From assembly GCA_977016875.1 (NCBI GenBank), contig CDRNST010000025.1:2604001-2668000 (forward strand): a stretch of DNA of 64,000 nucleotides. The letters are read 5' to 3'. Within the stretch, counting starts at the first letter, position 1; each line of letters starts with the position of its first letter. The DNA is from Pavona decussata. Taxonomy: Eukaryota. Shown here piece by piece: positions 15,807 through 58,977 of this stretch. Made by a program: the position numbers and the translations under genes. The notes beneath the pieces were generated by a model. The model saw only the letters and a program-made list of their open reading frames with translations. It did not search any database and had not been told where the DNA came from.

Positions 15807-17694
15807 GCGTGACACAGAACAGAACATGACTGCACAATAATTTCCTTCAAATGCAAATTACAGAAAAATGTTTTCATGAATCATCAGACTCAGTGGATGC
15901 TAAAGAAGCCAAACAAGGGGAAGATATATTCGGAGACGTGGACGGGCTCTCAAACGATAGTTCAGATAATATTACAGTATTAAATTGCAGAAAATTCATA
16001 GTCCAAATCACAGGATTTTCTTCTCTGTTTTTGAGTGGGGAGAAGCTTTTATTTGGTAGGGCTTTCTGGGGGCTGAGGGTTTTAATGTTGGAAGATATTT
16101 ACGTCCCACGTTTGAGCTAACTGAAAAACATTTTGGTCGTCAAAAACTACAAGCATAAAACTTAGTTGTTTGGTCGTCTTATAATATAACTGAGAAGTAT
16201 AAACTGAGTTTTCTACCAACAGAAGCTACGAACACCCGCATAGTGTGTTTTTGTGAAGAGATTATTGATACTCTTTAAATGAGCATTGGCCAAAAGCAAA
16301 GCTTCGTGCGCTTGCACACTTGTTTTGAGAACACCAAACATGGTTGCCAATAGTTTTTAATTGATGATGAGTACCACCATCCCGTCAATTGAGACTGGAG
16401 CCCATAATAAAGAGCCTCTATCTGTATTAACTCCTTGGGTCAAACCTTTCCCGAGTAAATTTATTTTATTGAAATGCTTTTTCCGCAAAAAGGTTTGGAG
16501 TATAACTTTTGATCTATAATTATTTAATTATTATTGCTATTCTTTGACTGGGTATTCAAAATGTGGGCTTCACCTGAGAGCCGTTCTGAGAATAAATATA
16601 GCCGGGAAAGGGTTGATTTCACTGAGATTTAAAGTAACCTACATAACTACACTCTGAATTGTAGTTTCTACTTAAACAATAGAGCGTTTTTGTCGAGGCA
16701 CCATCGGCTGACAGTTGCCCGTGGAAATTTGACATTAGCCTGAGATGATAAACTTCGAGGACTTATACTTGAATATTGTACTATTTTAAAAACATCATAT
16801 TGATAAGGACAACTATCAAACCGACAGACACGAGACAGAAATACTCTATTTTTATTGTTCAGCACTAAGATAATTTTTTCGGCATGATTTAAAATTCACT
16901 GAGACCGGTATTTCCCATCCTACTGCTTTCCAATTTAACCTCAGTTTAATTTAAGGTGAAAAGTTGAAACAAGAAAAGACGAATATCATAAGTAATATAC
17001 TAAGTAATGAATTGGATGAATAAATGGAAGGTTTTTTCGGGGACGAGTACAATCCATCCAGGCATTTTCACCTGATGGACACTTTGCCCTGATAGCACAG
17101 CGCTGATAGTGTCTCTCAGCGGATGGGTTGTATCACATCACGTGATCAATTTAATGCGATCGGGCTTGGAGAACATTTTGCAGTGAACTATACTGGGTGT
17201 TACTGTCGATCGATCTGTGTAATGACAATCACAATCAGCAAAATTTCCCATGTCTCCGATGTGTATTAGATACTGCGATGTTCGTCTGCGAAGGAAAGCT
17301 TTCAAGGAAAGTAAGCGCTCGTTACCACCAACACTTCTTGTCAGGTGAAAAACCCGTTATATACAACTAACAATTTCTACTAACAAAATTATCAGATTAT
17401 CTTTTGACGTTTTTAAATGGGAGAGGATAAGTCTCTCTGCTCAGAAAGTGTGTTCCCTCTGTCAGACGTCCAGTCAATAGACACAGTAGAGTGTTCAAGA
17501 AACGTGACATGCACGAAAGAGACTAACTTGTACGTCAGGGAGAAATTCTAAATTTTACTCAGGTTGAAATGAGAGGATGAAACTCTCCAATCACACATTT
17601 CAAACTGTGGTTAAATAGTTACAACTATTTTTAAAGCATCTACTAAACCATGTGTGTATTATGTATTTTTTTTATAACATATTTCTTCCATAAG

Positions 17695-18080
17695 TACCAA
17701 GTGAGATTAAAGCACGAGGACCAAGAGCGCAGCTTGCCTATGTAAATGCGTTAAAGACTGGAAAAGTAAACGTGTACCGTGCTAGAATCATGCTGATAGG
17801 CCAAGATCGAGCGGGAAAGACGAGTTTGAAGAAATCATTCTTAGGTCTGCCATTCGACCCTAATGAGCAGAGCACTGATGGAATAGAGGTTGACCCATCA
17901 AAGTTCGAAATTGACGTTGATCAAGTGAAGAACTGGCAGCGAACTGACGAGAAGTTAAGTGTGTCTCAGTTTGCAAACGACCTTGCAAAGATGGTGGCTG
18001 CTCAGATTGGAGAAGATGAAACAAGTGTAAACCCAGGAGTTCAAAATGAATCAAAGGAGATGACATATCAAAAGAATGAA
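17695..18080 (+). pseudogene. Copy B Roc GTPase exon 1 (P-loop)
   Basis: IMLIGQDRAGKTSL (G1) and QSTDGIEV (G2). 386 nt, as in copy C. Confidence 0.85.
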
Positions 18081-35603: not shown

Positions 35604-38600
35604 GTAAGTACACGGGTAATCTTCAGCACTTTTCGTTGGGCAACATGTTTGCATGAATCCGATCGACTTGAATGGCGCTTATTATGTTGGTGGACTGGCT
35701 TCTCCTAGTTGTAACACAGGAAAATTTACCTTCTCTCACGCAGAAATGACTAAAAGATTGTGTTTGCAGCGTTTGTCTTTTCAGTTGCTCTCTCATTCCA
35801 GGAAGTTTTACTTGTCGGTCGAGTCTCAAAGTATCAAATGCCTCAGCAATGTTATTAGCGTGAACTTGAAATTTCGAAGAATTGCTTCGACAATTGGCTT
35901 TTTGTTCGCTGGATTGTCAACATTTGAGCCCTTATGCGCTTGTTACCATTTTATAACTGTCAGGCACTTTATTTTTTAGGAATCAAAATGGGAAATGAGA
36001 AAAGCAGTCAGACAGTCGTAAATCTTGGCTGATTTCACATGCAATGCAAATTGATTTGTCTCATACGATTGTTTTGACTGATTGTGTTCTTAGTTGTAGC
36101 GTTCTAAAATTTTTACACTGTCAAAGTTTTATTGAAATGTTTCATTTTTAACGTGATTAAACGGTTTGTTAAGGATGGATTTCAAGTCTCAGTGTGCAAG
36201 TCATGAAAGTGGCGAATTTTTCTGTCTGTCAGTCACAGATCACCCAAGTATAACATTACTTTCGGCAAATACAAAAGTTGTTTGTTTGGTATTACTAAAA
36301 CTCACAATTTGGGCAAGACATTAAAGTCAAGTTACTGGTGAGTATAAAATAAAGCATCACATGGTGTTGTCTACCATTACAATGGGTTTAAATGCGTTTC
36401 TGAACAGTTTTTGGAGCCAGCAATTAAAAAAAGTCTCTATGTTGTAGAAGTGGATTAATGTATTAATAAGCAAGGACTTAATTTTATATGCAAGAGCGAA
36501 TTTGACAGACGTCTTGTTTACAAACTGCCTCGAACTCATTCTCCCATGAAATTATTTTATTTTATCATTCCTACTTAACGACCTACTTGACGCGCAGAGA
36601 AAAGCATAACATACAAATATTTTTCTGAAAAGCATTCGCACATATCTTGTCATTCTTGAGAATGCCCACAAAAACACCAAAGCGCATCAAAAATGCTGGT
36701 GTGGAGTTCGTGAGTCACATTGAGTGTCACAGTCAACCCAGGTCACGCGTGAACGGTATTTTCGAAATTTGAACGCAGTTTTGAAATTTATATGTTAGTT
36801 TTGAAAATCGCCAACGGGATTTCAGAGTTCCCGTATAAATTTCCCTAGCTTATTGACAGTATAAAGCTATGTATTTTTCTTTACTTTGCAAAATTAAATA
36901 TTTTAAGAATTACAATTGTTTCCCAAGTATTTTGAATCTTTTTTTTTCAGTTAATGCGTCTTTTTCGGAACGATTTTTGGAGAAATGTCCAACATTCCAT
37001 TCACACGTCGGACAGAACAAAGAATGTTTATTTCATTCTTGGAAATACTGTTCACGCGTGACCTGGATTGGCTGTAAGCACTGCATGGGAACCAGAGTGA
37101 AATTGAGCCCCAGGGAGGGAGGAGCGAGATAGTTTTTGATCTCTCCTCGTTGGAAGGTGGTGAGGTAATGCTACCTCGGCTTGAACCCAACAAGACAACT
37201 GCAAGAAAAAATGGAAGTGTTCCGCATCCGTATGGCCCTTTTATGCTTCTTGTCGAGCTTGGTAAGGCTTCATTAGTTGAGTCTAGGAAAAGGATATTTG
37301 ATATTAACTGAGTTTCATGTGTGTGAGCTAGGCGGCTGAAGAATACCCCGTCAACTTACGGCATTTTCAGACAAAGCAAATTAAATTAATCTTGTTAATT
37401 TTTGTTCTTTGAAGGAAAGGCAGCGGTGTGGCAATATTGTCGTTACCGGCTTGTTCTTGTCAGAAATCGTAAAAATCGTAAATATTATGCTTGGGTAACA
37501 AGTGTCTGTTACCACTGCAAGTTATAGGCAACAGACAGAACTTTTAACTCAGGAAATTAGGCAAAGTAAGGTTTTTTAAACTGATGTGTCATGTGCATGA
37601 AGTACATACAAAAGAGTACGGTTATTGGGGAGACCAAAATCTGATATAAGTAAAACAAATAAGAACATAAGAAATCTTACTCACATGATCATATACAATG
37701 TATTTGAAAACTAAAAAAAAAATAATCAATTACAATAATAACGAATTATTACAGAGGAAACAGTCCGCACTTTTCGTTAACGAGATTAGCAAGACCAACA
37801 GATTTATTCCACCTCTTGAAAGTAGGTAACGTACCAGAAGATCTTACGAAATCATTTAATTTGGACCAGATCACTATGTAGTTATGTTTACCATATGCAT
37901 GGAAAGTGGTGAAATGCCCGGAGTATTCCACCGTGTTGGGAGAAGGGGGTGTTAATTAAAGATTTGAATTGATCGGCGCATGATCTCGCCAAAGAAGACT
38001 TTCCAGTTGTAATTTCAGTTCAAACTGAATTGAAATTGAGGGGGGGAGGGGGGGGGAAGCTAAAGATAAAAAAGACATTAAGCTACCTCAAGCGTCACGT
38101 CCTCTCATCATGCAGGATTCTTAATGTCACGTAAAATGTATTAAGTCACGCAGGATCCATCTCGTCATTTAGTCCAACGCAAATCACGAAGCGCGTTCCT
38201 CGGGCCCCAACGCGCGCGATCCGTGCGGAAGGGAGGAAAACCGAATACCAGCAGCTGTAGCAGGGCGGCCTTAGTTCCAGTCCTCTTTCTCCTGTTTCCA
38301 ACTTAACAACTATACCTATTATGACGACTAGAAAAATGCTCAAAAATGTTTTATTGCCGGTTTTCATTGTCGATTTTTGTCACGCCATTGAAAAAAAAAA
38401 AAATGGAAACCATTCCATGAATGAAGTAAAGAAATTGACAAGTTTTGGATGATGAATAAATAAGGAATCTGTCCAAGTGTTAAGGTCTGTGCGGTATTCT
38501 GTACTCGAGTTACTTGACAAAATGTTTCACACCGAATATTTAGAGCTTATGGCGGCCGAAAATAGGAAAAAAACATCTGGAGTTCACTTTTCCAGAGAAG

Positions 38601-39033
38601 GGGTTTGTTTTCCCTTGTGAATTTTCGAATGTTAGGATAAATATTTCTCCTCAAACTTAAATTTTTGAGAATGCTAAAAATCACTCGAAGATACGACCGT
38701 CGTCCTTTATGGCACGCACGATGAAAACTCGGAAATTGAAACTGTTCTATTTTCAAAAAGGAAGTACGACATCGAGCTAAGAAATTGTGAAAACACATAT
38801 TTTTAGGTAATCTTGCCCTGAATGAAGACCTCCCGGTTTTGAATTTTACAATTTGGTGTCGTCACGTGAAAACCAAGGATTGCTTTTTGTCCGCGTGGAA
38901 GCAGCCACCCTTCATAAAGAGTATACCAGGGTGGCTCCTATTATTACTTTAAAAATACTGATATCGATTATTTGAATTTCCATTTGAATTTCAGTCTTCC
39001 TATGTAACGGAGTGAGACAGTGTTTCCAAGGCT

Positions 39034-40462
39034 ATGGAAGAAAATTCAGAGTACCAACAAAGCATTGAATTCCGCAAACAGCGTCTAAATCTTTTTAATG
39101 AACTTGGAGATAGACGAGCAGAGGGAGAGGAATACATACTTCTAGCCGAGACGTATTACAATCTTAAAGACCACCAACAAAGTATTAAACATGGTAAAGA
39201 AAGCTTAAGTATTGCTAAGGAAATTGGAAATAGACAAGGAGAGGAAAACGCGTACAGAGTTCTAGCGAAGTCGTATTACAATCTTAAAGGCTACGAGCTT
39301 AGTATTAAACATGGTAAAGAAAGTTTAAGTATTGCTAAGGAAATTGGAAAAAGACAAGCAGAGGAAGTAGCGTATAGACTTCTAGCCGTTTCGTATTACA
39401 AGCTGAAAGACTACCAACAAAGTATTAAACATGGTAAAGAAAGCCTAATTATTGCTAAGGAAATTGGAAATAGGCAGGCAGAGGAACAGGCGTATAAACT
39501 TCTAGCCGTTTCGTATTTCTATCTTAAAGACTACCAACTAAGTATTAAACATGGTAAAGAAAGCCTAAGTATTTCTAAGGAAATTGGAAAAAGACAAGCA
39601 GAGGGAGAGGCGTGTAATGTTCTAGCCAATTCGTATTACTTTCTTAAAGACTACCAACAAAGTATTAATCATGGTAAAAAAAGCTTAAGTATTCCTTATG
39701 AAGGTGGAGAGAGACTAGCAGAGGAACAGGGGTATAGACTTCTAGCCTTTTCGTATTACAATCTTAAAGACTACCAACAAAGTATTAAACATGGTAAAGA
39801 AAGCCTAAGTATTGCTAAGGAAATTGGAAGAAGACAAGCAGAGGAAGGAGTGAATAGAGTTCTAACCTGGTCGTATTACAATCTTAAAGACTACCAACAA
39901 AGTATTGAACATGGTAAAGAAAGCTTAAGTATTGCTAAGGAAATTGGAGAAAGACAAGGAGAGGAACACGCGTATAGAGTTCTAGCCTGGTCGTATTACA
40001 ATCTTAAAGACTACCAACAAAGTATTAAACATGGTAAAGAAAGCCTAAGTATTGCTAAGGAAATTGGAAATAGACAAGCAGAGGAAGAAGCGAATAGAGT
40101 TCTAGCCTGCTCGTATTACAAACTTAAAGACTACCAACTAAGTACTGAACACGGTAAAGAAAGCCTCCGTATTTCTAAGGAAACTGGATATAAAACTGGA
40201 GAGGTGAATGTTTACCAGATATCTTCAGACTCCTATAAAAGTCTTGGAGACCAGAAACAAGCAATGGAATGGGTTAACCAAATAAGAGAAGCAGAGTCGT
40301 CGTGCAGTCTTGGAGAAAACGAAGAAGCCAGTGAAAGCAACCTTGAAATGCAAATTACAGAAAATGGTTTTGATGAATCATCAAGCTCAGTGGATCCTAA
40401 AGAAGCCAAACAAAGGGAGGATAAATTCAAAGACGGAGACGGACTTTCGAACGATAGTTCAG
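39034..40462 (+). CDS. Copy C exon: TPR repeat region plus acidic linker
   Basis: ORF 39034-40485 with 40-aa units of the type AYRVLAxSYYNLKDYQQSIKHGKESLSIAKEIGNRQAEE (TPR_12/TTC28-like). Donor ttcag|gtaata. Confidence 0.92.
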
Positions 40463-43400
40463 GTAATATTACAGTTTTAAATTGAAGAAAATTCGTAGTC
40501 TAAATCAGAGGATTTTCCTGTCTGTTTTTGGGTTGGGAGAAGCTACTATTTGGCAGGCGTATCTGGGGGCTGAGGGTTATAATGATGGAAGAGATTTACG
40601 TTCCACGTTTGAGCTAAATGAAAAGGATTTTGGTCGTGATAAACTACAAGAGTAAAACTTAGTTGTTTAGTCGTCCGATAAATATTAAAATTATCCGAAC
40701 GTGACGATAGACAGGACAAAAGAACTTTAATGCAATAGATACAACCTAACTGAGAAGTACAAACTAAGTTTTCTACTAAAGAGCGCTAGGAATACCCACA
40801 TAGTGTGTTTTAATTTTTCTGGCGCGATTTTTGATGCTTTTAAAATGAACATTGGCCAAGAGCAAAGCTCTGTGGGCTTATACACTTGATTTGAGAACAC
40901 CAAACATGATTACTGATAGTTTTAATTGATGATAAGTACCATTATCCCGTCAGTTAAGTCTGGAGCCTCTATCTGTATTAACCCCCTGGGTCAAACCTTT
41001 CCCAAGTAGATTTATTTTCTACTCGGAATGCCCGCAGGGCAGGCCGTGTCTAAGTTTGGGTCGGGTATCTTTTTTTTTCTCTTCGTCGTAGTCACAAATC
41101 GCCAAATTAATTTATGCATTAAAATATGTCCTCCCCTAGTAGGGATGTATTGTTCTGATTGTCTTCAACAAAATTAGACCAATCAAAATCTATTATTCGG
41201 GCACATATCACGAGAGAGGGGACTTACTTATCCCTTCCTGTGTGACGTCAAATCATTATTTGATTTATTCATTAAACCTTGATTAAATTCCTCCCTCTTC
41301 CAGAAGAGATTTATTGTTCTGATTGTCTTGAACAAAAACAGCCCAATCAAAATCTATTATCGGCGCATATATCACGAGGGAGGGGACCCACTTATCTCTA
41401 CTTGTGTGACGTCAAAGCAAGTCATCATTTCGAAAAGTTGTTTTTGTTCAATGGCGGCCACATGTATGAATTTAAGACTCTGATCTGCCGTTTTCAGAGA
41501 TAAAACAAACCTTTTTCAAGCGGTAAATCGAAATAATAACTTCTAGGTAGTACTCGGCAGTTGAAACGGTGGAAATTGGGAGAGTTCACACCGAAGAAAT
41601 TCGGCTTTCATAAACAGATCGAATAATCAACGCGAAGGATTAGAGCTAGAGGAGGCCAGGTCAGTTCAGCGGGGTCATGACGTTATTGCAGTTATTTCTG
41701 GTATGATTCCTAGTAACACAACGATAAGTGTCACGCAATATATCTGAATAAAACCATTAAGACAATTATTTCAATTGCCAAGGGAGGATAGTTTTTAAAT
41801 ATCTGCGAAACATACAATGGGGGATAATTGAGGCTACATTAAGCATTCCGTGTTAATGCCATTAGCAGGGCATCTTGTTTGATCTGCTTTTCCCCCAGTA
41901 GGGATTGGTGATGAATTTTGATCTATGACAATTTAATTGTTATTGCTATTCTTTTATTGGGTATTTAAACTGTGGGCTTTCCAAATTCCCTGAGACCCGT
42001 TATAAAAATAAATATACTCGGGAAATTAAGGGTTGATTTCACTGAGATTTAAAGTAACCTTTATAAGTTAACTACACTCTGAATTGTAGTTTCTACTTAA
42101 ACAATAGAGCGTTTTTGTCGAGGCACTATCGGCTGATAGCTGCCCTGCGGAAATTTGATGTTCTTTCAATTTTATTTAAAAAAACAAAATTAATGTTAGC
42201 CTGAGAATTAAACTTCGAGGCTTATACTTGAATATTGTTCTACAACTATCAAACCCGATACGATAGACGTGAGACGAAATTCTATTGTTTTTATTGTTCA
42301 GCACTAAAACAATTTTCCGCATAAATTAAAAGTCACTAGGACTGGTATTCCCATTTTACTGCTTTCCAATTTAGCCTCAGTTTAATTTAAGGTGAAAAGT
42401 TGAAATAAGAAAAGACGAATATGCAACTTACAAGGGTAAAAAAATATACAACGAAAATCACCTTTTTGTTACTAAGTAATGAATTGGATGAATAAATGAA
42501 AGATCTTTTTCGGGAACAAATACAATCCATCCGGGCATTTTCGCCCGATGGACACTTTGCTCTGATAGCACAGCGCTGATAGTGTCTCTCCGTGTATGGC
42601 TTGTATCACATCACGTGATCAATTTAAACGATCGGGCTTGGAGAAAATTTTGTAGTGAACTATACTGGGTGTTATTGTCGATAGATAAGTGTAATGACAA
42701 TCACAATCAGCAAAATTTTCCATGTCTCCGATGTTGTTAGGTTGTGTTTATTAGATTCTGCGAAGTTGTCTGCGAGGGTAAGCTTTCAGAGGAAAGAAAG
42801 CGTTCGTTACCACCAACACTCCTTGTCACGTGAAAGCTCCGTTATATACAACTAACAATTTCTACTAAAAAAATTATCAGATTCTCCTTTGACGTTTGTA
42901 AATGGGAGAGAATAAGTCTTTCTGCTCAGATGGTGTGAATTCCTGTCAGGAGTCCAGTCAATAGACACGGTAGAGTGTTCAAGAAACGCGAAATGCACGA
43001 CAGAGACCAACTTGTACGTCCGGGAGAAAATTCTTAATTTTACTCAGGATGAAATGAGAGGATGAAACTTTTCAGCCACACGTTTCAAACTGTGGTTTAG
43101 TAGTTACAACTAGTTTTAAAGTATCTACTAAACCATGTGTGTATTGTGTTTTTTCTTGTAACATATTTCTGCAATAAGTACCAAGTGAGATTAAAGCACG
43201 AGGACCAAGAGCGCAGCTTGCCTATGCAAATGCTTTGAAGACTGGAAAAGTAAAGGTGCACCGTGCTAGAATCATGCTGATAGGCCAAGATCGAGCGGGA
43301 AAGACAAGTTTGAAGAAATCCTTCTTAGGTCAGCCATTCGATCCTTATGAGCAGAGCACGAATGGAATAGAGGTTGATCCATCAAAGTTCGAAATTGATG

Positions 43401-46400
43401 TTGATCAAGTGAAGAACTGGCAGCGAACCGACGAGAAGTTAAGTGTGTCTGAGTTTGCAAACGACCTTGCAAAGATGGTGGCTGCTCAGATTGGAGAAGA
43501 TGAAACAAGTGTAAACCCAGGAGCTCAAGATGAACCAAAGGAGATGACATATCAAAAGAATGAGGTTGGTATCCTGATGTACATAGATTAGATAGAGAAC
43601 TTTTAGACTGAAGTAAGTAACTGTACGATGCAGCAACAGCACAATACAACACAATGTAATGAATACGTTACCGCCGACCGGCAGTGTAATACAGTACGTT
43701 AATAGTTTATCAGTTTTTGTTTCATTATTCTTACCCACCTTGTCAAAGAGTGGTTTAGCAGCCAACATTTTTGCCTTTATGATTTTTACCACCGAAGGTT
43801 TTTTTCGTTATGTTGATCAAAGTAAGTATCTATGGTAACGTTGGAAACTAAACTGAGGTCTTGTTTTTCTGATTGAATAGTCTGGTTTTACCGCCGCTAA
43901 GGAAGATGAGTCTATGGAGAAAAAATCTCAAGTAAATCAGGTTGGTTACATTATTTTTAAAAGAAAAAAAGGTAAGCACATCAAAACAGAAACTATTGTT
44001 AGACTATATCGAACGCATTTTTTCGGTTTCAGTCAAGCTCGATGACCTGAACACGAACAATGTTTGCTATGGAAGTACAATGAACATAAAGGGGCCATAA
44101 CGGTAAAAACAAACAAAAAATAAAAAAAAGTAAAACAAAACAAAACAGAAAAATTTATTATTCTTACAAAGCTTGTCAAAGAGTAGTTTAGCAGCCAACA
44201 TTTTTGCCTTTATGAATGTTACCACTGAAGGTTTGTTTCGTTATGTTGATCAAAGTAAGTCTATGGTAACGTTAGAAACTAAACTGAGGTCTTGTTTTTC
44301 TGATTGAATAGTCTGGTTTTACCGCCGCTAAGGAAGATGAGTCTATGGAGAAAAAATCTCAAGTGAATCAGGTTGGTTACATTATTTGCAAAAGAAAAAA
44401 AGTAAGCGCATTAAAACAGAAACTATTGTTAGACTATATCGAACGCATTTTTTCGGTTTCAGTCAAGCTCGATGACCTGCACACGAACAATTTTTGCTAT
44501 AGAAGTACAATGAAACTAAAGGGGCCATAACGGTAAAAACAAAAAAACAAAACAAAACAGAGAATGCTTTGCATCAGCGTTTGTTTGAAATTCATATTGC
44601 ACCCTACTAAACTAATACATGAATTAACTTTATCAAGCTACTTTCAGGAATGTCATCATAGCGTCGATTACAAACGAAGCACTTCTAAAAGGATGACTTG
44701 TATTGCGAGGGTCTCAAGTTAAAATCTTCCTGATGGATTGCTAACACATGAGACCCTGCCTCAAATCCTAGGCGACCCTTTGGAAAAAAAAAGCAAAGTA
44801 AAGTGGTCAAATTGCGGTCTTGATTGATTGATTTATTGATATCTCCCCTCAACTGAAAAGCGTGTGGCGAACGGTAGTCGTGTTCGCTTTGGTTTCATTC
44901 CATCGTGCGTCATCACTAACTAAGACCAACTAATAAAACCCTGACTTCTTCACACTCGTTTTCTCGCACTTCTAAAATATTATATGCATTTTCCGGCTTC
45001 TAGTTCTGATTGCATTATTGTCTCGCTTGCCTTTGTTATGATTGATCACAATGACGACTTTGGCTTTGCTTTAAAAAGTCCTTTTCAAATCGCTGTATTA
45101 GACGTAGGAACATGTCTTCTTATGCGAATATCGGTACATTAGGATTAAGTATTGCAAGCGGGATTGACTAACAGATATACAGACAGCATTCTCTAGAAGC
45201 TAGTGTTTACATATTCCTAACGGGTGTCCTTTTTTTAGTTCAACTGATAAAAACGTAAAACGGTGTTAAGGAGAAGTTTTGCCTTTTGAGCCACTTATCA
45301 GACCAACAGCTACGATATCGTAACCATTCAAAAAACTCCTTTCAGGATCCTATCAGGGAAGGAACCACATTTGCGAAAGTCCATGAAGCTCAAAATGGGC
45401 GCCACAACGAGAAAGCAGCTAAAGAATCTGCATTGAATTTCGACCCTACTTTGCCTCCGGAGGAATTCACAGATCTTCTCGTTCAACATTTAAAAGGTTT
45501 AAACCTGCCAAGTGATTCAACATCAGCGAAAAACCACATGACTCTAGACCTTTGGGACTTTGCCGGACAGCATCTTTATTACGCTTCCTATCCAGTGTTC
45601 TTGTCATCACGAGCAGTTTATATGTTGGTGTACAATCTCAGCAAAGGATTAAAGAACATTGCTGAGCCTTGTGTCAGACAAGGTGTTAATGACATTCTTT
45701 TAAGAAACCCAAATGGCGAAACAAATTTGGAGAACTTGTTGTCGTGGCTTGTTTCAGTCAGAACTATGTGTTCAGCAAAACCAAATTTAGTGAATAACAG
45801 GAAAGAGACTGACAAAGAGCCATCTTACCTACGTCCCCCTGTGTTTATTGTAGGAACACATGCTGACAAACCTCTCCAGGACATTAAGATAATGGAACAC
45901 CTGATCCAGACAGTGCTTTCTCGAAAAGACTTTGATGGTCACGTAATCCGGCCTTTTTTTTCAATTGATAATACGCAAGGGTCATCAGGGGCTGGCGTTC
46001 GTGCAATTCAGGAAAAAATGATTGAAGTGTTGCAAGAAGAGCCATACATGGGGGAGGAGGTACCAGTTCGGTAAGTTTACAAAATAAGAACCAGTTGCAA
46101 CATCACGCACTCGGCTTTTGAGTTCGTTCAAAGCGCACATAGTTGACCGTTGTTTTCCTTGATTATTCAGTAACTGAATATCAAGGTCAAAGTTGAGATA
46201 TGTGTAATAGTAATAGGGAATGGACGTCAAAACTTGAAAAGTTGCGTTTGGTAGGGGAACGGAAAAGGTAGCTTTTCACAGACTTTGTAGTTTCTATAGA
46301 AAGAGCGTACCATACGGGCAAAAACATCCCTCTACTTTACAACGTAATACAGCTAAAAAAACAAAGCTACCAATATAATATTTACATGTTGCATTTATTT

Positions 46401-48372: not shown

Positions 48373-51300
48373 CTTTAATAGTAACATCCTCGTGAGGTTT
48401 TTCAGGAACTATTTACAAACTATTTCCAATTTATAAAAGCAAAAATGACAATAAAAACTCGAAATCACAATTTATGCTGGTGTTTTACTAAAATTCAAAG
48501 CTTATGAAGGAAATGTCTGCCTCAATAACATGGTAGGATTATTTATGCAAATGTTCCAGCAGGAAATGTTTAACACAAGCAAGTAGACGTTTCCTCTTTA
48601 TTCTGACTCCTTGCACCTTAATTACATCTGAGAATGTTCGTGAACGAACGCTTACTGATGTTTTAAAAGCTAAATGAAAAACAAACATTTCACACTCAAG
48701 CCTGTCGTCAGTTTTACTGACGTTTTACTTTTCCCCGACCGTCACTCATGATCCAGGATTGTTATAATGTTAAAATGAAAACCCGTGCAAAGCAGCCCCT
48801 TGAACTTAACTCCCCAAAAGGGAAGTAGTAAATGCACGGTTAAATGTGCCCTACCCATAATGTGTGATGACATCAGCCGCTCGTCGTTGGTATCGTTTCA
48901 CATTTTGTGTGAAGAAACAAAGAAGCGTTTGCTAAATTTAGTGCTCTCTATTCAAAACTTTCTTTTCAGACATTATGATCATGTCACAAACTCGGATTTT
49001 GTGCTTTATCAGGTGTTTCAAACAACTGTTTCTCGGTTTCCCTGATTATGTAAATAACCTAATCTCGTTTTTGATGGTGTCTTCAATATAGCTCGCCTCA
49101 GCGGATCATAATTCAGAAATTAATCAGCGAGTAGTATGATATCGCTAAAACAGACCTAAAAATAAGATTGACGTGTAAACCCAACTTGCTGTGTTTCACA
49201 TTACTAACAGGATACACTGCGGGTGTACTTTATATAGGGGTGTTATGCATTTTTTTTCTTCGTATATTTCTCATAAGTAAACATGCAAGAATGTTTCCTT
49301 GGTGTGTTTAGATGGTTAAACGACCTTGATATAGTGTCTCAAAAAATCCTCCTTATTGATGTTGTTTTAATTTTTTGACAGGAATCTAGACATTCCAAGT
49401 TGTGGAGAGACATGGAAGAAACAGGCGTTCTTAGTATGCAACTTGTTGAACACGTATTTTCCAAGTATTGTCAGCAAGGCGTACCCAACGAGGACATTTT
49501 GAATATGATGGAGCATTTCGGATTGCTAGTGAAGTTTGCGAGGTCTCCAAGTGATATACATTACTTTGTGCCAGCGCAACTGAAGACGCCACCTAAAGCC
49601 CTTCGAAAAATGGAACCCTCGTTGTCCGACCCATGCCCCCTGTATCTTCACTTTTTAGAGGGTTTTGTTCCTCTTGGCCTCTTCTTTCAGCTGGTGTCAA
49701 GGTGTTCTCGACGGTGCCCTGCTAATGGATTCACGCAGCCTCCCAGATTTTATGAGGGGGCGTCGACCTTCTTCCTTGAGAAAACTTTCCGCTACCAACT
49801 GACCCTTTTGTGCAAGAAAAGGTTCATCAAGATTGTATTGAAACACCAAAGAACACGAGACGAGCAATTGCCTCCGACCGAAGAAGAAGAAGTAGCAAGT
49901 CATGTGCGAATGTTTCTGGAAGATGAATTGAGCAATATGAGACAAGAGCTGCCCTGGTTGAACAATTTAAAGTATGAATTGTGTGTTGAATGTCCTTGCT
50001 GTCCGGAGGAGGATATCAAGTGCGCAAACCACGGTCAAGTCTCTTGTGCACATGAGGACTGCATGAGCCTTGTCAAGGTTATATCTGGAGGGTGTTTAAG
50101 CTGCTGCTTCCAATGTTGTCAAACAGCGAATCTCCCCAGACTGGAAAAGTGGTTCTCGGTCAAAGGTGAGGACAATGTGTCGTATATGGTTAAATTAAGA
50201 TGATCGATATAAGTCAGTTTTGAAAATGGTTTAATGACTGGTTGCCTTCATGAGCTGTAAGTTATACAATCAAGACCTAAACGATTGGTTAAAGATACTA
50301 GTAAAAGAGTTATCTCTTCAGAACCCTAGCCAGAACAATTAAACCCAAAAATGGACGGGTAAATGCGCACGTCCACCGTTAGTTGTCTATTTACGATAAC
50401 AATCGCTATCGGTCTTCTTATTTTGTGAATAAGGTGAAAAATCCTTTAAAAAAATGCTGATAGCTATTAGATCCAAGACAGGGTATTCAAACCCCACTCA
50501 ACAACCTTATAGGAAAAAAAAACACTAAACATACAGGTAAAATTGAATGTTGATATTGTGGAATAATGCTAATTTACTAACTGTATTTTTACTGTGTCCT
50601 AATATCAACAAAATAATTTTAGAAGATTCGGTTGAATTGCAGTGGGTATCTGTACTGCCCAAAATGTCTTGCGTCGTCAGCTCGCGCACACATAAAAAAC
50701 ATTTCGATTTGTATTTTTTTGAGGCTAAGAAAATTAAATTATTGGTCGTCTTCTTCTTAACGTGCATGGTGGCTTATTATTTCATATTATATTAGCTATT
50801 TCTAGACCGGGGGAGTGGAGGGGATTGGTTGATCCTGCCCGCACCGACTTTGAGTATTTTTTATATGTGAGGAAGCGCCCCAAAACTTCGTCACTTTTTG
50901 TTTAGATAGTTATCTGGAATCAATTTTTTGTGCGTGCAGATGCCCAAATGGCCCCATATCCTCGGTACTGTCATTTGTTTCGGCACCTTTAAAGCATTTT
51001 ACTGTCACTTTGGTGCGCTCTTTAAAGAAAAATACTGTCTAGTGTTTCATTGATAGGGAGTAATGGCTTAGTATTTTAATGCTGTTGTCACAAACTTTAG
51101 TTTTTTAATGCTGTTGTCACAAACTAGCAAAATTGTTATACACTGCATGCAGCCCTAATAACGTGAAAAGAGTCTGATGAAATTTCTAATGTAATCCTGG
51201 GCTGGATGTAGTTAGCTACCGTGCAAATTTTCCAAAGAAAATTAATTACAACTTCTTGTCATCTACGCGTGTATCAGTGTAGTGGAAGGGAAAACTTTAT

Positions 51301-54300
51301 TAATTGTTTAATACAGGTACTTCAACTGATGGTTTGTTTAAAGAAAGCCAGGCACATACTATTTTGAAGAGAGGATTGTTACACAAAAGGAAAAGAGACG
51401 CAGAAGACACAGGTAAAACATCTGAATCTCTGTTGTTTTTGTGGAAAAACACTCACTAAGGCGTTGATATCAGTAAATACAGTACGCAAAAACCTCGGAA
51501 AGCAGGCATTATTAATTTCGTCGTAAGACGTGCAAGAGATTAACTTGAATACATGTTTCAGTTAAGCATACATGAGAAGTTCTTATTAGTTATTGATTTA
51601 CAGGTACGTCAAGTGATGATTCGCCTGAACAGACGCCAATATCTTGTAAATCCAAGAGAGTGTTGTCGCACCGCACTTATAAAAGTTCCAAACGGAAAAA
51701 GTGTGTGGAAGTCTCAGGTAAAAACGCCTAAATCTGTATTACTTTTGTAAGATAAAGTAATTGATTTTTCTGTGGCCTAATGAAGACAATCATTCAAGGA
51801 GATTCCATTAAATTGCACTACACATCCATACTACGGTACTTTCTTGCGTTGCAAACGCGTGGGAGAGAATGGGGCAATTATTAGTCCTTTTCTGGTAAAA
51901 AAAAAACATAGTGACTTCCTATTTTTTTTTTTTTTTTGCACGTATTTTAAGAAAATACGACTCTTAGCGATATCTTCAAATTTCAAAAATTTTCTTGTCT
52001 CAGTTTTGAAATATTCTCAGGATCAGCTATTACAATTTGTTATTTAAGTGCTTCATTGGATGGGTGCAGTAACCCAATACAACCCTATGTTTTCGTTAGT
52101 GTCATACTTTAGCAGTTTTAAGGCATTCTACTATCACGCTGTTACGTCGTTACGTTCTTACAAGAACAATAAGTAATATTTTATTGACAGGAATAGCTTT
52201 TTGGAAGTAGTGGGTGACTCATCTCTCAAGGCTTGGTTTTTTAGTAATGATGTCATAAACTAGCAAAGTTATTATATACTTCATGCATCCCTACAGCGGA
52301 AAACAAGCAGTAACCCCCATTTTTTTCTCTTCAATCTTGATATACTAGATATAATAAGCAACTGTGCAAATTTCTCACGAAATTCATTAAGTTTGTTTTT
52401 CGGTGGAAATGCTTTAACATCACCTTTAGCTTGTAAACATGCTTGCCTNNNNNNNNNNNNNNNNNNNNNNNNNNNNNNNNNNNNNNNNNNNNNNNNNNNN
52501 NNNNNNNNNNNNNNNNNNNNNNNNNNNNNNNNNNNNNNNNNNNNNNNNNNNNNNNNNNNNNNNNNNNNNNNNNNNNNNNNNNNNNNNNNNNNNNNNNNNN
52601 NNNNNNNNNNNNNNNNNNNNNNNNNNNNNNNNNNNNNNNNNNNNNNNNNNNNNNTTCATTTGTTCCGTCCTTCTTTCTTCCTCCCTTATTCCCTGTCTCC
52701 CTTCCTTTCTTTCCTTCTTTCTTCCTTCTTCACTTCTTTCTACCTTCTTTCCTTTTTGCCTTCCTTTGTTTGTTTCTTCCTGGTATTCTTTTCTTTCTTC
52801 ATTGACACTTTAATAAAGTGATTGATTTATTTTGTTTCATTAACAAGATGCTGCGCGCATTGAAAGGGAATTCAATTGGCCTTAAGTAACTATCAACACA
52901 TGCATCATTCTTTCTTCGATCAGTACGTCCAAACATTGTAATAAAGGGAGCGAAATTAGATAGACTGTAACACCGACTTATGGTACAGTTGAGCTGCATC
53001 CATCGTATCTTTTATGTATGCAGAGATTGCAGAGACAGACGTGCATGAAACACCGGGAAGAATGATGTCATTATTAATCTATTCCCCCCCCCCCCCCCTT
53101 CCCAACCCCTTACTAGGACTACTGAGTGCCTGCATAGTTGAGCTCGAACTTTTTGGTTACCAATTCCTGACATTAAGCCTTGCTTTGTATGGTCTGATTA
53201 ATATTTTAAGGATGCCTCAGTTAGTAATGGCAACTATAGTAAGTTATATATGAAAGTTCGTCTACCTGATGTGTTATAATCACTTGGAGCTTCAAAACAT
53301 TTAGAAAGTCTAATAAGGTTTTTGCTTACTCTTCAGCGAAGCAAAATTTACGTGATGTCGAGCAACTGCAACATTATCTCAGGAACACCACCAGGATGAC
53401 TGACGTATCAAAGAGGTTGGAAGAAATTGCTTCAGACAAAGGCTTCACAGTTTCTGATAATGAAGGATCAGGAAATTGCATGTTTTACTCATTGTCAGAA
53501 CAACTGGACCTTGTGAAGGGAATTCGGATATCTCAAAACGCGTTGAGGCAGCACATTGTCCAGTATCTCGAGAAGAACCCTACTCTGGTGAGTCGCTTAG
53601 GGTGAAGAATCTTGGAAGATGTCGATGTCAATTGATGACCATGATGTAACTGTAAGGGAATATAAATTTTAAAAAAAGTCATCGCATGTGAGATGCCAAC
53701 TCAATTCATCAAGTATATTGTGGAAATGATGAATTGGGAAGAATATTTTTTTCCGAATACTAGACAACATTTCATCTTTTTGATGGTAGCTACTGTTAAT
53801 TAAATTGGTGCACTGAGGTACACGGAAAAATTGGGCAAAACCGAAAGATTGTCGAAACTTCACTAATATTGAGGACATTTAATGTTCATTCTTACAGAAA
53901 GCAGTGAGATTGAGCTTGTGACCATCTTAGGAAGGTTTTGGAAAATCTTAAAAAAGACAGTGTACAATGAAACTTCCAGCAACTTCAAAAAACTGGAAGA
54001 AAAGAAAACCAAATGCTTTGCTAGGCATTGCCTTCCTCCTTTTGAGCTAACATCCGCCTTAACCAAATATGATGCTTATTCTTATTATTTTCTTCTTTTT
54101 AGTCAGATGGCACAAAACTGTTCAATTTTGTTCACGGGTATCAGTCTTGGTCTGATTACCTAACAAAGATGTCTGCAGATGGGACGTGGGGTGATCACGT
54201 GATTCTCCATGCTGTATCAAACTGCTATGAAACATGCATTCATGTGATTAGCAGTCTCTCAGCCAATCATGACGTAACCATCAGCCCAGAACAAAATCGT

Positions 54301-54573
54301 GATGTTGACAGCAGCAACCGGCTTGTGCTGGGGCACTTACACGAGCACCACTATGTCAGTCTTCTACCCAAACCAGGTGAATAAGCTGTCACAGTTAAAC
54401 TTTGAAAAATAGGTATTGGCAGATACAAGCTAGTCGGTTTGACCTACGAGCAGATAATCAGGGCCAAACTGAACGATAAAATGGGTAAAGTTAATGCGAG
54501 CCAAAAGCATATCTGGTTATTGCTACTTGTATCATTTGCATAGAATTTCGATTAGTTGACACTGTATAATATC

Positions 54574-54654
<81 letters not shown>

Positions 54655-57216
54655 GCGGCAGATATCGCAGATGAGAGTTTATTATACGGGCCCATTGATT
54701 ACATTCCTCCTGGCGTTTTTGACCTGATCGACGAGAAAATGATCTTTGATGCTGCATCCAAAACAAAGGGCTCAGCCGGGCCGTCGGGGATGGATGCCGA
54801 GCTATATCGAAGAATCCTTTGCTCCAAGAATTTCAAGGCTGAAGGCAAGGTTTTGAGAGAGGAGATTGCCTTTTTCACAAGAAATCTGTTAAAGATCGCT
54901 TACCACCCGTCTTTGCTAGAAGGCTACACCTCTTGCAGACTCATCCCCTTGGATAAAAACCCTGGAATACGACCTATTGGCGTTGGCGAGGTCCTGAGGC
55001 GAATAGTTGGAAAAACTATCGCTGGATTTTTGAAGGAAGAGATCAAAGACGCAGCGGGCCCCCTTCAGGTTTGTGCAGGCCATAGTGCAGGCTCAGAGGC
55101 CGCGATACATGCTATGAGTCAAGTGTTTGCAGAAGAAGGAACGGATGGTATTTTACTGATAGATGCAAGCAATGCCTTTAACCAAATGAACAGATCCGTC
55201 GCCTTAGATAACATCCAGATAACCTGCAAGGAAATGTCACTTTACATCATTAACACCTACAGAAGCCCGTCGAAGCTCTTTATTTGCGGCGGAGGTGAGA
55301 TACTATCACAGGAGGGTACAACGCAGGGGGATCCCTTAGCCATGCCCTGGTACTCGGTCAGTACATCTATCATGATCCAGAGCTTAAGGATAAGCACACC
55401 AGGTGTTAAGCAAGTATGGCTAGCCGACGACTCTGCGGGGGGTGGACTAATCGTGCCCTTGTATAATTGGTACAATCACCTGAGTCAGGAAGGAAAGAAG
55501 TATGGTTATCTAGTGAATGGACCAAAGAGCTGGCTGATTGTCAAGTCGGACGTACTTGCAGTTGAGGCAAAAAAGGTGTTTGGAGACGAGGTTAATATTA
55601 CAACTGAAGGTCAGTGCCACTTAGGGGCCGTCATCGGATCTCAAGAGTTCAAAGATCAATATTGTCGGGAAAAGGTCCTTGGATGGAAAGGAGAACTCGA
55701 AGCCCTATCTGAGATAGCAAGGAGCCAGCCTCATGCAGCCTACACTGTTTTCACGAAGGGTTACAAATCCAAGTTTACCTATTTCATGCGCACAATAGAG
55801 TCGTTTGAAGATTACGTTGACCCTATTCAAGAGGCGATTGACGACTTACTCCTCCCAACACTATTCGGTCAAACGGAGCCCCTCCCTAGCAATCTGCGTC
55901 AGCTTTTTACTTTGACACCCGCTCAAGGAGGGCTTGGCGTACCTGACTTACGGTTTGAAGCTCCATAGCAGTTTGCTGCTTCTACGACAATAACAGCATC
56001 GCACGCAGATTCCATCACCAAACAGAGCACTTTCATGGTGGCAGGCGAGAGGTCCACGGAGGAGTTAAAAAGACAACATCAAGCTTCAAAAATTGCGTTG
56101 GTGAAATCGAGAATGGAAAGTATTGATTCCACTCTACCCTCGGATCTGCTGCGGTCAGTTAACCAATCGAGAGACAAGGGTGCGAGCTCGTGGCTTACCG
56201 CAGTACCTCTTGTCGATCAAGGCTTAGTGCTGAATAAACAAGAATTCAGAGACTCTCTGCGTTTAAGGTATAATTTTCCCCTGACTGATTTACCAAGCAA
56301 GTGTGTTTGTGGGGAGAAGTATACCGTCTGCCATGCCCTGTCATGCAAAAAGGGAGGGTTCGTGGCGCAGAGACATGATGGCGTCCGCAACTTACTTACC
56401 TCTTTTCTTGGTAAGGTTTGCACCAACGTTGAAGTCGAGCCACAACTACAACCTCTCGACAATGAGCAATTCAACCTCAGAAGCGCGGTGACAAGTCCGG
56501 ATGCAAGACTGGACATGAAGACAGGGGGCTTTTGGTCTCGAGGAGTTACAGCATTTTTCGATGTCAGAGTAACGCATGTTAACTCCAAGTGTAACCAGAG
56601 AAAAGCAACATCGACAATCTTTAAAGAGCAGGAAGAGGAGAAAAAGCGGAAGTACCAACAGAGGGTGCTGGACGTTGAAATGGGATCTGTCACTCCCCTA
56701 GTTTTTGGAACCAACGGTGGGATGGGAGCCGACTGCAATTGCTTTCTCAAACGCCTAGCCGAGAAGCTCTCAGAAAAGAATGAGGAACCTTATCACATTA
56801 CTATCACTTGGATTAGAACATTGCTTTCTTTTGAGATTTTAAGGTCGGTACACACATGCGTAAGAGGCTCCAGGACACCTTTTCACAAAATTCCATTTGA
56901 GGATTTCATTGATGACTGCCGCTTAAACGCTAGCCAAGCGTGTCTCCGCTAATTTTAGAAAGTGAATGATGGCGTGACGTTGTAAATTAGTATTTTAGGA
57001 TCTTTTTAACAACTTTTTTTATTTCATCAAAATTTTAGTCTTACTATTGTTAAAAAATTGTGCTTGAAAATAGCTCTGTTGTGCTTGGAAATAGTCGCTT
57101 TTTTTTTAATCGAAATGAATTTTAAATATTGAATTGTAAATAGGTTTTAATAGCTCTTTTTTCTACTTTTAACTTGTAAATATCAATTTTGCTTGGAATA
57201 TTATAATAAAGAAAGA

Positions 57217-57298
<82 letters not shown>

Positions 57299-58977
57299 TC
57301 TAGGCATTTCTACAAACATTTGTGGATGCCAACTTTCAAAATATTTAATGTCAACTCCTGCTAAAATAGAGGCCTTTAGGACCACGATCTAGTGCGGTGC
57401 GTAATGTTACCAATTCATCCTCGCTGGGTCTTCATTCCTATCCACAATAACAAGATGTCTGTAATGGAAAGGTGTTCGCAAGACTGAACTTAACTGTATT
57501 TGATTACAGTTGAAGGGTTTGGTACGTGGTGAAAAGGGGTGTGAGTGATAGTTTGCCACAAAAATTCGACGCGCTCCACATAAGCTTTTTCCTTTACAGA
57601 TTGTTATTTACATTTTTATTGTTAATATCTTGATAAGTAAACCAGGGCTATCACTTAATGTGCTACGTAGAAGCTGTTGGTATATTTTGGAACAGCGTAG
57701 TATTAATTGGCAAAGAGGACACCTTCTGAGGATACTAAAAATTAACCAAGGTCTCTGTCTTGCTAGTTGCGACTAAAGAACAGTTTGAAAGCAGCTCGTA
57801 TGGCGCTATCCCCAACCTCTCTGAACGCTCTAGCAATCACTCTTCCCAAAAAACACATGCACTGCCAAAGGATGGGGAACAACAAGTCATTGAACATCTA
57901 AACATTCAGTGATTTTCTACGTTCGTTATATGTACAATGAACAGTATGAACAGTGTGAAATTCGCATTTTGATCGTTGTAGCGGAGTTAGAAGAGTTTGC
58001 ACGTACAAATGACGTCATTAAGAGGTGTAACTGGCGCACGTGATGAGAGTCTAGAGTCCAGTCAGATTGACTGGTCAATAAATTTTTTCAAACTGTTTTG
58101 GCGAGTAGCGGAAAACACAGGAAAATTTTTTGCGGGAAAGTAAAACTTGTCCAATGAAAATCTGTCGACGCCCGTTGCAAGTGACTTCAACCAGGTTAGA
58201 AAAAGCTAGAATTTTGTTGTGGTGTGAAAAGAAAGGAGGTATTTGTCGAAAAGTGATGTCCATAGAAATCCTGTAATGGCGAGTAATCGATTACAAATCG
58301 CAGTGAAGCGGCTGGCGTGCTGTAATATTTTGGGGTCAGAAATTCTCATCGTGACATTTGTCACGCTACTCGAAACGGCTCGTAGCGCACTTCTTAGTTC
58401 TTGCCGCAGTTTGACGTAATCTGTTTGTTATCAGACAACAGACGCACTTTTTACATAACTAACGCCTTGAAGACGGTGGTTTGCTGTATTTATTGGCCGA
58501 TATTTTCAGGGATTTTGATACATAGCAAATTACATGTGCTTGCACTGTTTTGTTCTTGTTAGGTTTTTCAGGGAGTCATTACTTCGAAGGGATTTTAGTG
58601 ACAGACTTTAATTTTGCTGCTTGCTTCTTTCAAACAATGGCAACCATCGGTACTTTACGTTATTCTTATTTAAATGCTCAAGCACTCTGTTCTTTGTAGT
58701 TGCAGTTAAAGATGGCAGTCCATCTCCTGATGAATTGGAGGAAGTATCAGTGAGCATTGGCAAATCTTGGCACGCGCTAGGACGTCGGCTAAAATTTGAC
58801 AAAGCAAAGCTGGATGGGTTTGACCATTGTAAATGGGAGTTAAGCGAGAAAGCATATGAAATGCTGATGAAGTGGAAACAAAAGGAAGACTCAGCTGCAA
58901 CGTACCAAGTTTTACATGAAGCATTGTGTCACAAATTCGTAAATCGTACAGATTTAGCGGACAAAATTTGTCGTTAA
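39034..58977 (+). CDS. Copy C, apparently complete gene: TPR x10 - Roc - COR - Cys-rich - OTU - Death (about 1568 aa ROCO protein)
   Basis: Exons 39034-40462, 43179-43564, 43881-43940, 44312-44371, 45346-46070, 46428-46677, 49382-50165, 51317-51412, 51604-51717, 53337-53587, 54103-54376 and 58700-58977 total 4707 nt, in frame with canonical sites. An in-frame TGA at 39013 precedes the ATG. The gap at 52449-52654 could hide an exon. Confidence 0.85.
39052..40260 (+). repeat. Coding tandem repeat, about 10 x 120 bp
   Basis: agtattaaacatggtaaagaaagc or a close variant recurs at 39181, 39301, 39421 ... 40141 with an exact 120-nt period. Confidence 0.95.
41021..41880. mobile_element. Copy C specific insertion of about 860 bp with an internal direct repeat
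   Basis: Absent at the homologous B site (about 16470). cggaatgc/gcattccg sub-terminal inverted repeat; about 110-bp direct repeat at about 41148 and 41311. Confidence 0.55.
43179..43564 (+). CDS. Copy C Roc GTPase exon 1
   Basis: VPSEIKARG...RARIMLIGQDRAGKTSL (G1) and QSTNGIEV (G2). Confidence 0.9.
43881..44371 (+). CDS. Two duplicated 60-nt phase 0-0 microexons (43881-43940 and 44312-44371), SGFTAAKEDESMEKKSQVNQ
   Basis: gaatag|tctggt ... aatcag|gttggt occurs in both units of an approximately 431-bp tandem duplication. Confidence 0.6.
45346..46070 (+). CDS. Copy C Roc exon 2
   Basis: LDLWDFAGQHLYYASYPVFLS (G3), PVFIVGTHADK (G4), FFSIDN (G5 region) and PYMGEEVP. Confidence 0.92.
46428..46677 (+). 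CDS. Copy C COR exon 1
   Basis: RWFNFEK, MLDFYHDLGII and QWLIDVFKQLIT. Confidence 0.88.
49382..50165 (+). CDS. Copy C COR exon 2 plus Cys/His-rich segment
   Basis: ORF 49400-50203; 784-nt exon, the same length as in copy A. Confidence 0.88.
51317..51717 (+). CDS. Copy C linker exons (51317-51412 and 51604-51717), both phase 1-1 with basic clusters
   Basis: acag|gtac ... cag|gtaaaa boundaries; 96 and 114 nt, both open. Confidence 0.68.
52449..52654. other. Assembly gap (206 N)
   Basis: Run of N followed by CT-rich low-complexity sequence. Confidence 0.99.
53337..54376 (+). CDS. Copy C OTU exons (53337-53587 and 54103-54376)
   Basis: DNEGSGNCMFYSLSEQL, GTWGDH and LGHLHEHHYVSL. Confidence 0.88.
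54574..54652. repeat. (TTA)n microsatellite at the 5' flank of the retroelement
   Basis: About 26 TTA units. Confidence 0.95.
57218..57297. repeat. (TTA)n microsatellite / 3' tail of the retroelement
   Basis: About 26 TTA units with one interruption. Confidence 0.95.
58700..58977 (+). CDS. Copy C terminal Death domain exon (divergent type)
   Basis: WHALGRRLKF, EKAYEMLMKWKQKE, ATYQVLHEAL and NRTDLADKI. Acceptor tttgtag, phase 1. Confidence 0.85.

Follow-up and report, generated by a model that had tools for sequence, protein, structure and literature searches.

We analysed a 64,000-nucleotide stretch of the genome of the coral Pavona decussata (assembly GCA_977016875.1, contig CDRNST010000025.1, positions 2,604,001 to 2,668,000, forward strand; hereafter, the window), in which one exon encodes a tandem array of nine tetratricopeptide repeats (TPRs). 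With a probability of roughly two in three, we consider this array to be the germline-encoded ligand-sensing domain of a coral protein of the form TPR-Roc(-COR)-...-Death, in which the groove residues are diversifying. This reading draws on the anatomy of the repeats, an LGN-like fold, ratios of nonsynonymous to synonymous rates (omega) above 1, the coincidence of the changing residues with published LGN contacts, a variable number of units, and an in-frame junction with a Roc GTPase domain.

The window is eukaryotic DNA with a GC content of ~38%. Tandem Repeats Finder (TRF) detected a single array at 39096-40192, with a period of 120, 9.1 copies, 85% matches, and 0% indels. Translation from 39121 in 120-bp steps yields nine in-register units of 40 residues (u0-u8, ending at 40200) without indels. 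Across u0-u8, unit position 3 reads E,N,V,Q,E,Q,G,H,E (entropy 2.42 bit), position 10 reads E,K,V,V,N,F,W,W,C (gag,aag,gtt,gtt,aat,ttt,tgg,tgg,tgc; 2.73 bit), and position 14 reads N,N,K,Y,F,N,N,N,K. These nine units and residue strings are exactly those reported in an initial annotation of this DNA, made from the sequence alone; the additional variation that it placed at positions 5-6 extends over positions 5-7. Its description of the units as nearly identical in DNA was overstated, since pairwise identity averages 84% at the nucleotide level (72.5-94%) and 71% at the amino acid level (55-87.5%). The differences are concentrated in a few codons: 3 of the 40 (3, 10, and 14) carry ~26% of the differences among the 15 closest unit pairs, which is far beyond chance, and near-identical unit pairs differ mainly at the variable codons. 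The neighbouring helix B is more constant, as had been claimed, with an entropy mostly ≤0.5 bit over unit positions 17-36. On a helical wheel, positions 3, 7, 10, and 14 fall within ±40 degrees, in agreement with the single helical stripe proposed earlier, position 6 lies at -60 degrees, and the conserved positions 5, 8, 9, and 12 are opposite the variable stripe. Units 3-5, variable codons included, recur without mismatch in short contigs of two other sequencing samples, and the array is therefore not an assembly artefact.

Membership in the TPR superfamily is indicated by Pfam TPR_12 (7.2e-48, seven stretches) and by the conserved packing residues Y5, L8, A9, Y12, S21, and S28, which are the equivalents of canonical W4, L7, G8, Y11, A20, and A27. 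The AlphaFold2 (AF2) model has a predicted local distance difference test score (pLDDT) of 87.8 overall and ~97 in the array, in which each 40-residue unit forms two helices, A (unit positions 38' of the preceding unit to 14) and B (18-35). The end of helix B in unit 4 reads S-I-P-Y-E-G-G-E-R-L, and there the model interrupts the helix (residues 219-225) and pLDDT drops to 78; the divergence of this unit may reflect a hinge or be a sign of decay. The best sequence matches in the PDB (2e-29) are peptide-bound TPR domains, those of LGN/GPSM2 and Pins. Foldseek superposes the superhelical solenoid on solved TPR domains, and LGN/Pins are again the best matches, with E values of ~1e-13, TM scores of 0.76-0.82, and a root-mean-square deviation of 3.2-4.2 over ~345 residues. 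The HMMER alignment with LGN is ungapped in a shared 40-residue register, and the chain index corresponds to LGN numbering because N203, R221, R236, D81, N100, K106, R136, and Y139 land on the right letters.

This alignment allows the published ligand contacts of LGN to be transferred to the units, as given in later papers that refer to the structural studies. According to them, NuMA, Inscuteable, and Whirlin are contacted by inner-groove residues of LGN. N203, the Asn of a Leu-Gly-Asn triplet, mediates NuMA binding and falls on unit position 10, and the triplet Asn residues of TPR4-5 hydrogen-bond the backbone of Insc. R236 (unit position 3) and R221 (position 28) participate in NuMA and Whirlin binding, while R136 (position 3), Y139 (position 6), N100 (position 7), K106 (position 13), and D81 (position 28) contact Whirlin. 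Canonical TPR numbering equals the unit position minus one, so that positions 3, 6, 7, 10, and 14 become 2, 5, 6, 9, and 13, which form the concave ligand face of TPRs and are the most variable positions generally; canonical position 13 is a concave ligand contact in the TPRs of HOP. Four of the five variable positions (3, 6, 7, 10, and 14) are LGN contact positions, for which a hand calculation gives a chance of ~8e-4. The placement of the variable sites on the groove side of helix A, proposed in the initial annotation, is thus borne out by the alignment insofar as these sources report the contacts. The array resembles an evolving recognition surface because its changing residues coincide with the sites by which LGN and Pins grip their partners.

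Selection was assessed by three methods. Site-class codon models, which we wrote ourselves, were fitted on a maximum-likelihood tree of the units to three sets: 62 units, 53 paralog units from which the studied array was excluded, and the nine units of the array. In likelihood-ratio tests (LRTs), model M2a was preferred over M1a in all sets (77.9, 56.8, and 35.3, respectively), with ~7.5% of the sites in a class with omega of 4-15 (omega2). A posterior of 1.0 was obtained for positions 3, 10, and 14 in the 62- and 53-unit sets; in the nine units by themselves, positions 3, 10, and 37 had this value and position 14 did not. Omitting the variable codons from tree building added positions 6 and 7 to the selected sites; their support is weaker than that of 3, 10, and 14. 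In a tree-free test by Nei-Gojobori counting (NG86) on 31 disjoint nearest unit pairs, pN at 3, 10, and 14 was 0.387 compared with a pS of 0.136 over all sites, giving a ratio of 2.85 with a bootstrap confidence interval (CI) of 2.26-3.64. A per-site test with a free synonymous rate (alpha) beside the nonsynonymous rate (beta) gave alpha 0.89 and beta 4.38 at position 3 (p=0.003), alpha 1.08 and beta 5.47 at position 10 (p=0.05), and alpha 0.61 and beta 3.39 at position 14 (p=0.051). The initial annotation had anticipated site-wise ratios above 1 at the variable codons, and they are found at exactly 3, 10, and 14, also in paralog arrays outside the data on which it was based. Diversifying selection at these three positions is supported by the agreement of the three methods and by its recovery in the paralog arrays.

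Relaxed constraint alone would leave positions 3, 6, 7, 10, and 14 solvent-exposed and drifting neutrally on a scaffold under purifying selection. Concave positions are in any case the most variable ones across TPRs, the omega of the array as a whole is 0.91 and near 1, and the NG86 pN/pS at the three codons alone is only ~1.4, all of which would fit such drift. However, M1a already permits omega = 1, and M2a was preferred over it with LRTs of 35-78 and omega2 of 4-15. The CI of the tree-free ratio lies above 1, beta at the three sites (3.4-5.5) is higher than alpha (0.6-1.1), and most B-helix positions are far more conserved, with pN/pS of 0.1-0.8. With the B helix mostly conserved, the changes are restricted to helix A and its preceding loop. 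On balance, neutral drift is an unlikely source of the variable codons.

A mosaic could also be built up without selection, through short gene-conversion tracts from paralogs or through mutation targeted to particular codons. The same residues do recur at variable positions across paralogs, and the cap and the flanks resemble different paralogs, suggesting exchange. The synonymous rates at codons 3, 10, and 14 (0.6-1.1) are not raised, however, which argues that these codons are not mutational hotspots; neighbouring codons are not co-converted in the closest pairs, and single codons lying 3-7 positions apart on one helix face correspond to no known mutational mechanism. We regard this origin as very improbable and retain diversifying selection as the explanation of the variable codons.

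In the 602-Mb assembly, close paralog arrays (56-80% amino acid identity) were found at eight further sites on this contig, within 350 kb, and one additional family array, with in-frame stops, is located on another contig. The family comprises roughly 10 tandem paralogs of the form TPR-Roc-...-OTU/GT4-Death. All 10 family arrays keep the 40-residue register with no indels, have 4-10 units, and share the cap, tail, and exon end. In the unit tree, the first units and the last units cluster by position across paralogs, and internal units are intermixed, with some recent duplications within arrays: a three-unit block of L020 is duplicated at 95% identity, and u4 and u5 of L027 differ by one nucleotide, located in codon 3. 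L027 is the closest paralog of the studied copy, with 89-95% identity to it in the flanks, cap, and tail; none of the internal units has a colinear counterpart in L027, and their best matches (81-97%) are mostly with two consensus-like units. At position 10, Trp is dominant in the paralogs, and the studied array keeps this Trp ladder only in units 6 and 7.

Identity among internal units is 85.7% when both come from one array and 83.8% when they come from different arrays, a difference that is small although significant by permutation (p=0.0005), and the non-repeat parts differ between paralogs to about the same degree as the units do among themselves (cap 83.5%, tail 84.8% identity). Array-specific homogenisation as the main force is therefore rejected, and the term homogenised, used in the initial annotation, does not suit this array; it is part of a family-wide unit pool that turns over faster than its flanks. 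The accompanying claim that the array is diversified by recombination stands in part. In-register duplications, unit numbers of 4-10, and lost colinearity agree with it, whereas the variable codons themselves seem to have diversified by selected point substitutions.

These data also bear on whether the protein might be a housekeeping scaffold like LGN or TTC28, with one fixed endogenous partner and an old specialisation along the groove. Points in favour are that its nearest relatives of known structure act as scaffolds in cell polarity, that the best database matches are TTC28-like proteins, and that the first and the last units each keep their positional identity among paralogs. Against this, the internal units are non-colinear between the closest paralogs despite their 89-95% identical flanks, the unit number ranges from 4 to 10, and the Asn ladder of LGN is lost. 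Moreover, the gene belongs to a tandem cluster that turns over rapidly and also encodes Death, OTU, and conflict-type GT4 domains, and one gene copy has lost the array entirely. A conserved scaffold function appears quite unlikely to us, and we prefer the reading of the array as a diversifying ligand sensor.

Several family members are individually unusual. The middle gene copy of the window (Roc at 17772) retains only the last ~40 codons of the TPR exon at 15845-15964, with 75% amino acid identity to the tail; its repeat array is gone, and the splice donor GT has become AT. In L008 (G000:C25:2590843-2591685 plus tail), which lies upstream of the window, a run of >50 glutamates interrupts the acidic linker that follows the array, and the N-terminal cap is shortened. 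L005 (G000:C114:1792440-1793447), the sole family member off contig C25, is probably a pseudogene because it has in-frame TAA stops and a truncated tail. The six-unit arrays L002 (C25:2479635) and L003 (C25:2669257, just beyond the window end) are ~190 kb apart and belong to almost identical proteins with one substitution in the array, which points to a very recent segmental duplication or an assembly duplication. Four sequencing runs gave contigs of 57-350 nt with differences at, for example, 39137, 39151, and 40168-40174, for which allelic and paralogous origins are indistinguishable. A search of the assembly for an alternative haplotig by means of the unique flanks found none, the best other copies being paralogs with 83-95% identity.

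The whole array is contained in one exon, which runs from 39034 to a consensus donor (cag/gtaat) at 40463 in phase 1; the open frame extends over 39034-40485, and its ATG lies seven codons past an in-frame stop. The phase 1 donor and the acceptor at 43178 give an open TPR-Roc frame, and two PF08477 matches cover the two halves of the profile, as expected of the Roc domain of ROCO proteins. An RNA-like contig aligns from 43177 onwards, and its unaligned 5' part corresponds to the last 19 bases of a TPR exon. These 19 bases are exact in the exon ends of paralogs L003, L006, L008, and L020 and have one mismatch with the studied copy; therefore, the TPR-Roc splice holds for the family and not strictly for the studied copy. 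A GT..AG joint from 43562 to 43879 is also present in an RNA-like run. Further downstream, an open reading frame (ORF) at 49400-50200 is conserved in all three gene copies and is a COR-like candidate, with no Pfam match at E≤0.001. Pfam detected no NACHT or NB-ARC among the downstream ORFs, and Roc is present instead. The tandem gene copies also include a GT4 conflict-system glycosyltransferase encoded by a single ORF (PF20706, 6e-89, window 3142-4488) and an OTU protease fragment (window 10469-10867). The coordinates of the features are listed in Table 1.

Table 1 Features of the TPR exon and of the downstream exons and ORFs (window positions).
Feature	Position	Strand	Evidence and remarks
Start codon and N-terminal capping half-repeat	39034..39120	+	29 aa, resembles unit helix B; AF2 helix at residues 2-24; kept in paralogs
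Nine 120-bp/40-aa TPR units, u0-u8	39121..40200	+	TRF, unit table, Pfam TPR_12, AF2 pLDDT ~97
Variable codon position 3 (canonical TPR position 2)	39127-39129 + 120n, n=0-8; span 39127..40089	+	Entropy, M2a, per-site test
Variable codon position 10 (canonical TPR position 9)	39148-39150 + 120n; span 39148..40110	+	Entropy, M2a, per-site test
Variable codon position 14 (canonical TPR position 13)	39160-39162 + 120n; span 39160..40122	+	M2a, per-site test
Unit 4, most divergent unit	39601..39720	+	Poorest consensus match, 28/40; helix B end degenerate (Pro, Tyr, Gly-Gly)
Tenth, degenerate C-terminal TPR/cap	40201..40302	+	AF2 helices at residues 387-404 and 407-423; kept in paralogs
Acidic, predicted-disordered linker; exon end in phase 1	40303..40462	+	pLDDT <50 from residue 425; exon end kept in eight paralogs
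Intron, GT...AG	40463..43178	+	Sequence; acceptor 43177-43178; contains high-copy dispersed repeat ~40892-41995
Next exon, Roc GTPase start, P-loop GQDRAGKTS	43179..43564	+	In frame with TPR exon; Pfam Roc PF08477 1.5e-07 (43235-43588)
ORF with second half of Roc	45286..46074	+	Pfam Roc 1.2e-07 (45286-46071), profile positions 50-94
Death-domain ORF, putative C-terminal adaptor of the same gene copy	58621..58977	+	Pfam Death PF00531 1.3e-13

Repetitive elements surround these exons. The element at 40892-41995 has a word depth in the thousands in all four runs, and the ~0.5 kb of sequence directly before the TPR exon (38350-38885) matches ~35 dispersed loci at 70-81% identity. In the third gene copy, two long ORFs at 54556-56952, between the COR-like and Death ORFs, appear by eye to be a retroelement bearing a reverse transcriptase. 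(TTA)n tracts are located at 54574-54654, inside the start of the first of these ORFs, and at 57219-57298, ~270 bp past the second, and an N gap of 206 at 52449-52654 lies just upstream of them.

Several points weigh against the array being a diversifying sensor. Recombination between units inflates likelihood tests of site models, the single-site p-values are modest (0.003-0.05) and would fail a Bonferroni correction over 40 sites, and NG86 synonymous differences at the three multi-hit codons are nominally raised (0.285 vs 0.13). The assignment of the variable residues to the groove face is putative in that it derives from homology and not from the coordinates of the model. The contig that supports the splice fits paralog exon ends (of a paralog or an allele) and not the studied copy. 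Finally, the studied copy may be decaying, given its omega of 0.91, the degenerate unit 4, and a retroelement-like insert and an assembly gap between the downstream exons.

We propose the following scheme for the function and renewal of the array. The ~10.5 LGN/Pins-type TPRs would form a right-handed superhelix with the A helices lining the inner groove. The groove-facing residues at 3, 10, and 14, and less strongly those at 6 and 7, would set the specificity of each repeat under diversifying selection, and the packing residues and the entire B helix would hardly change. Two routes would lead to new arrays: point substitutions at the variable codons, and the duplication, loss, or exchange of complete units in register, either inside one paralog or among the ~10 in tandem. 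A ligand bound in the groove might then switch the Roc GTPase and pass a signal via the Death, OTU, or GT4 modules, possibly in immunity, cell death, or non-self recognition. More speculatively, and with considerably less confidence, the family could be a ROCO-based coral counterpart of NLR/VLR-type receptors, in which 3-5 groove residues over 4-10 repeats make up a combinatorial code that in-register exchange of units keeps renewing, that varies from colony to colony, and that serves pathogen, symbiont, or allorecognition.

Coral genomes contain large expansions of TPR-, NACHT-, CHAT-, and GT1-containing genes. The P. decussata genome itself has at least 1,389 candidate matches of this TPR type. 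In 19 sampled arrays of 10-32 units, the units are 67-93% identical at the nucleotide level, and several arrays are more internally conserved than the studied one. LGN-type 40-residue arrays of this length are abundant and distributed over many contigs (L009-L030); L011, L013, L023, and L026 have 91-93% nucleotide identity between units, and other arrays reach 83-86% amino acid identity. The most variable positions in the sampled arrays are 13, 3, 10, 6, and 28, again the LGN contact set, and omega was >1 in two of the three sampled arrays tested (L013 and L018). These arrays retain an Asn-Leu-Gly-Asn motif, while the Roc family has x-Leu-Ala-x instead. The same code logic may extend to other internally conserved LGN-type TPR arrays in the genome. 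In protein databases, a word-indexed search restricted to 265-845 aa and an exhaustive search of representatives returned nothing with >40% identity, which does not imply absence elsewhere; the best matches are TTC28-like TPR-CHAT proteins.

The closest structural counterparts of the array are LGN/GPSM2 and Pins (PDB 3SF4, 3RO2, 4A1S, 5A7D, and 6HC2), which share its 40-residue unit register and superhelix. In LGN and Pins, peptide ligands sit in the inner groove on the A helices, with contacts mapping to unit positions 3, 6, 7, 10, 13, and 28. The coral array differs in having only 23-24% identity to them, in having the triplet Leu-Ala-x for Leu-Gly-Asn, where x is hypervariable and is mostly Trp in paralogs, and in being multicopy, fast-evolving, and fused to Roc, whereas LGN is a conserved single-copy polarity gene. 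Pfam detected no GoLoco match in the coral TPR exon. Membership in the LGN/Pins/GPSM family was rejected owing to the absence of an Asn ladder (the aligned triplet is L-A-x, with x = E,K,V,V,N,F,W,W,C) and of GoLoco.

Expansions of genes for TPR, glycosyltransferase-1, CHAT, and NACHT proteins in non-syntenic regions have been described in Acropora (PMC12314368), and GT4-conflict architectures have also been described (PMC8195603). They share with the coral family the vocabulary of TPR_12, GT group 1/GT4, and Death domains, tandem expansion, and variable TPR length, and in the parts of these papers that we consulted we found neither a linkage with Roc nor site-specific selection on the TPR groove. 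The literature that we searched contained no report of site-specific selection on a cnidarian TPR groove or of a TPR-ROCO receptor family.

A closer parallel in mechanism is offered by the TPR, ANK, and WD repeats with high internal conservation (HIC) in fungal NLRs (HET-E/D, Pa_2_10340), in which three concave-face positions per TPR are positively selected (PMC4986451). Both systems have highly similar tandem repeats, variation in repeat number, exchange between family members, and selection at a few ligand-face positions, namely 3, 10, and 14 in the coral, and in both the repeats belong to a putative receptor for non-self or cell death. The analogy with fungal NLR repeats drawn in the initial annotation thus holds at the level of mechanism. 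The coral system differs in that it is found in an animal, uses a Roc GTPase switch rather than NACHT/NB-ARC, has no process like RIP (repeat-induced point mutation), and shows only weak array-specific concerted evolution. Assignment to the strict HIC class was rejected, with a mean of 71% amino acid identity against >85% over >=100 aa (Dyrka et al. 2014, PMC4986451), and NLR/STAND membership was rejected in view of Roc in place of NACHT/NB-ARC.

The LRR-ROCO and NB-ARC-TPR candidate immune receptors of Ectocarpus (Zambounis et al. 2012, PMC3341825; PMC11378527) likewise combine a ROCO GTPase with a sensor made of repeats whose concave face is under diversifying selection, and they form clustered birth-and-death families with reshuffled repeats. 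Their ROCO sensor is, in contrast, a leucine-rich repeat (LRR) domain with one exon per repeat that is reassorted by exon shuffling, whereas the coral sensor is a TPR array; because the whole coral array is one exon, its changes must come from in-register unequal exchange. By analogy, the coral family most likely follows the same logic as the fungal NLR repeats and the brown-algal LRR-ROCO and NB-ARC-TPR candidates and would be their animal ROCO-based counterpart. A Roc GTPase and Death domain chassis is not usually counted among animal immune receptors, and the locus provides a concrete case with a short list of specificity codons and the LGN-peptide complexes as a solved template for binding work. 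The comparison suggests that fungi, brown algae, and cnidarians came independently to repeat sensors that evolve under diversifying selection, on NLR and ROCO chassis.

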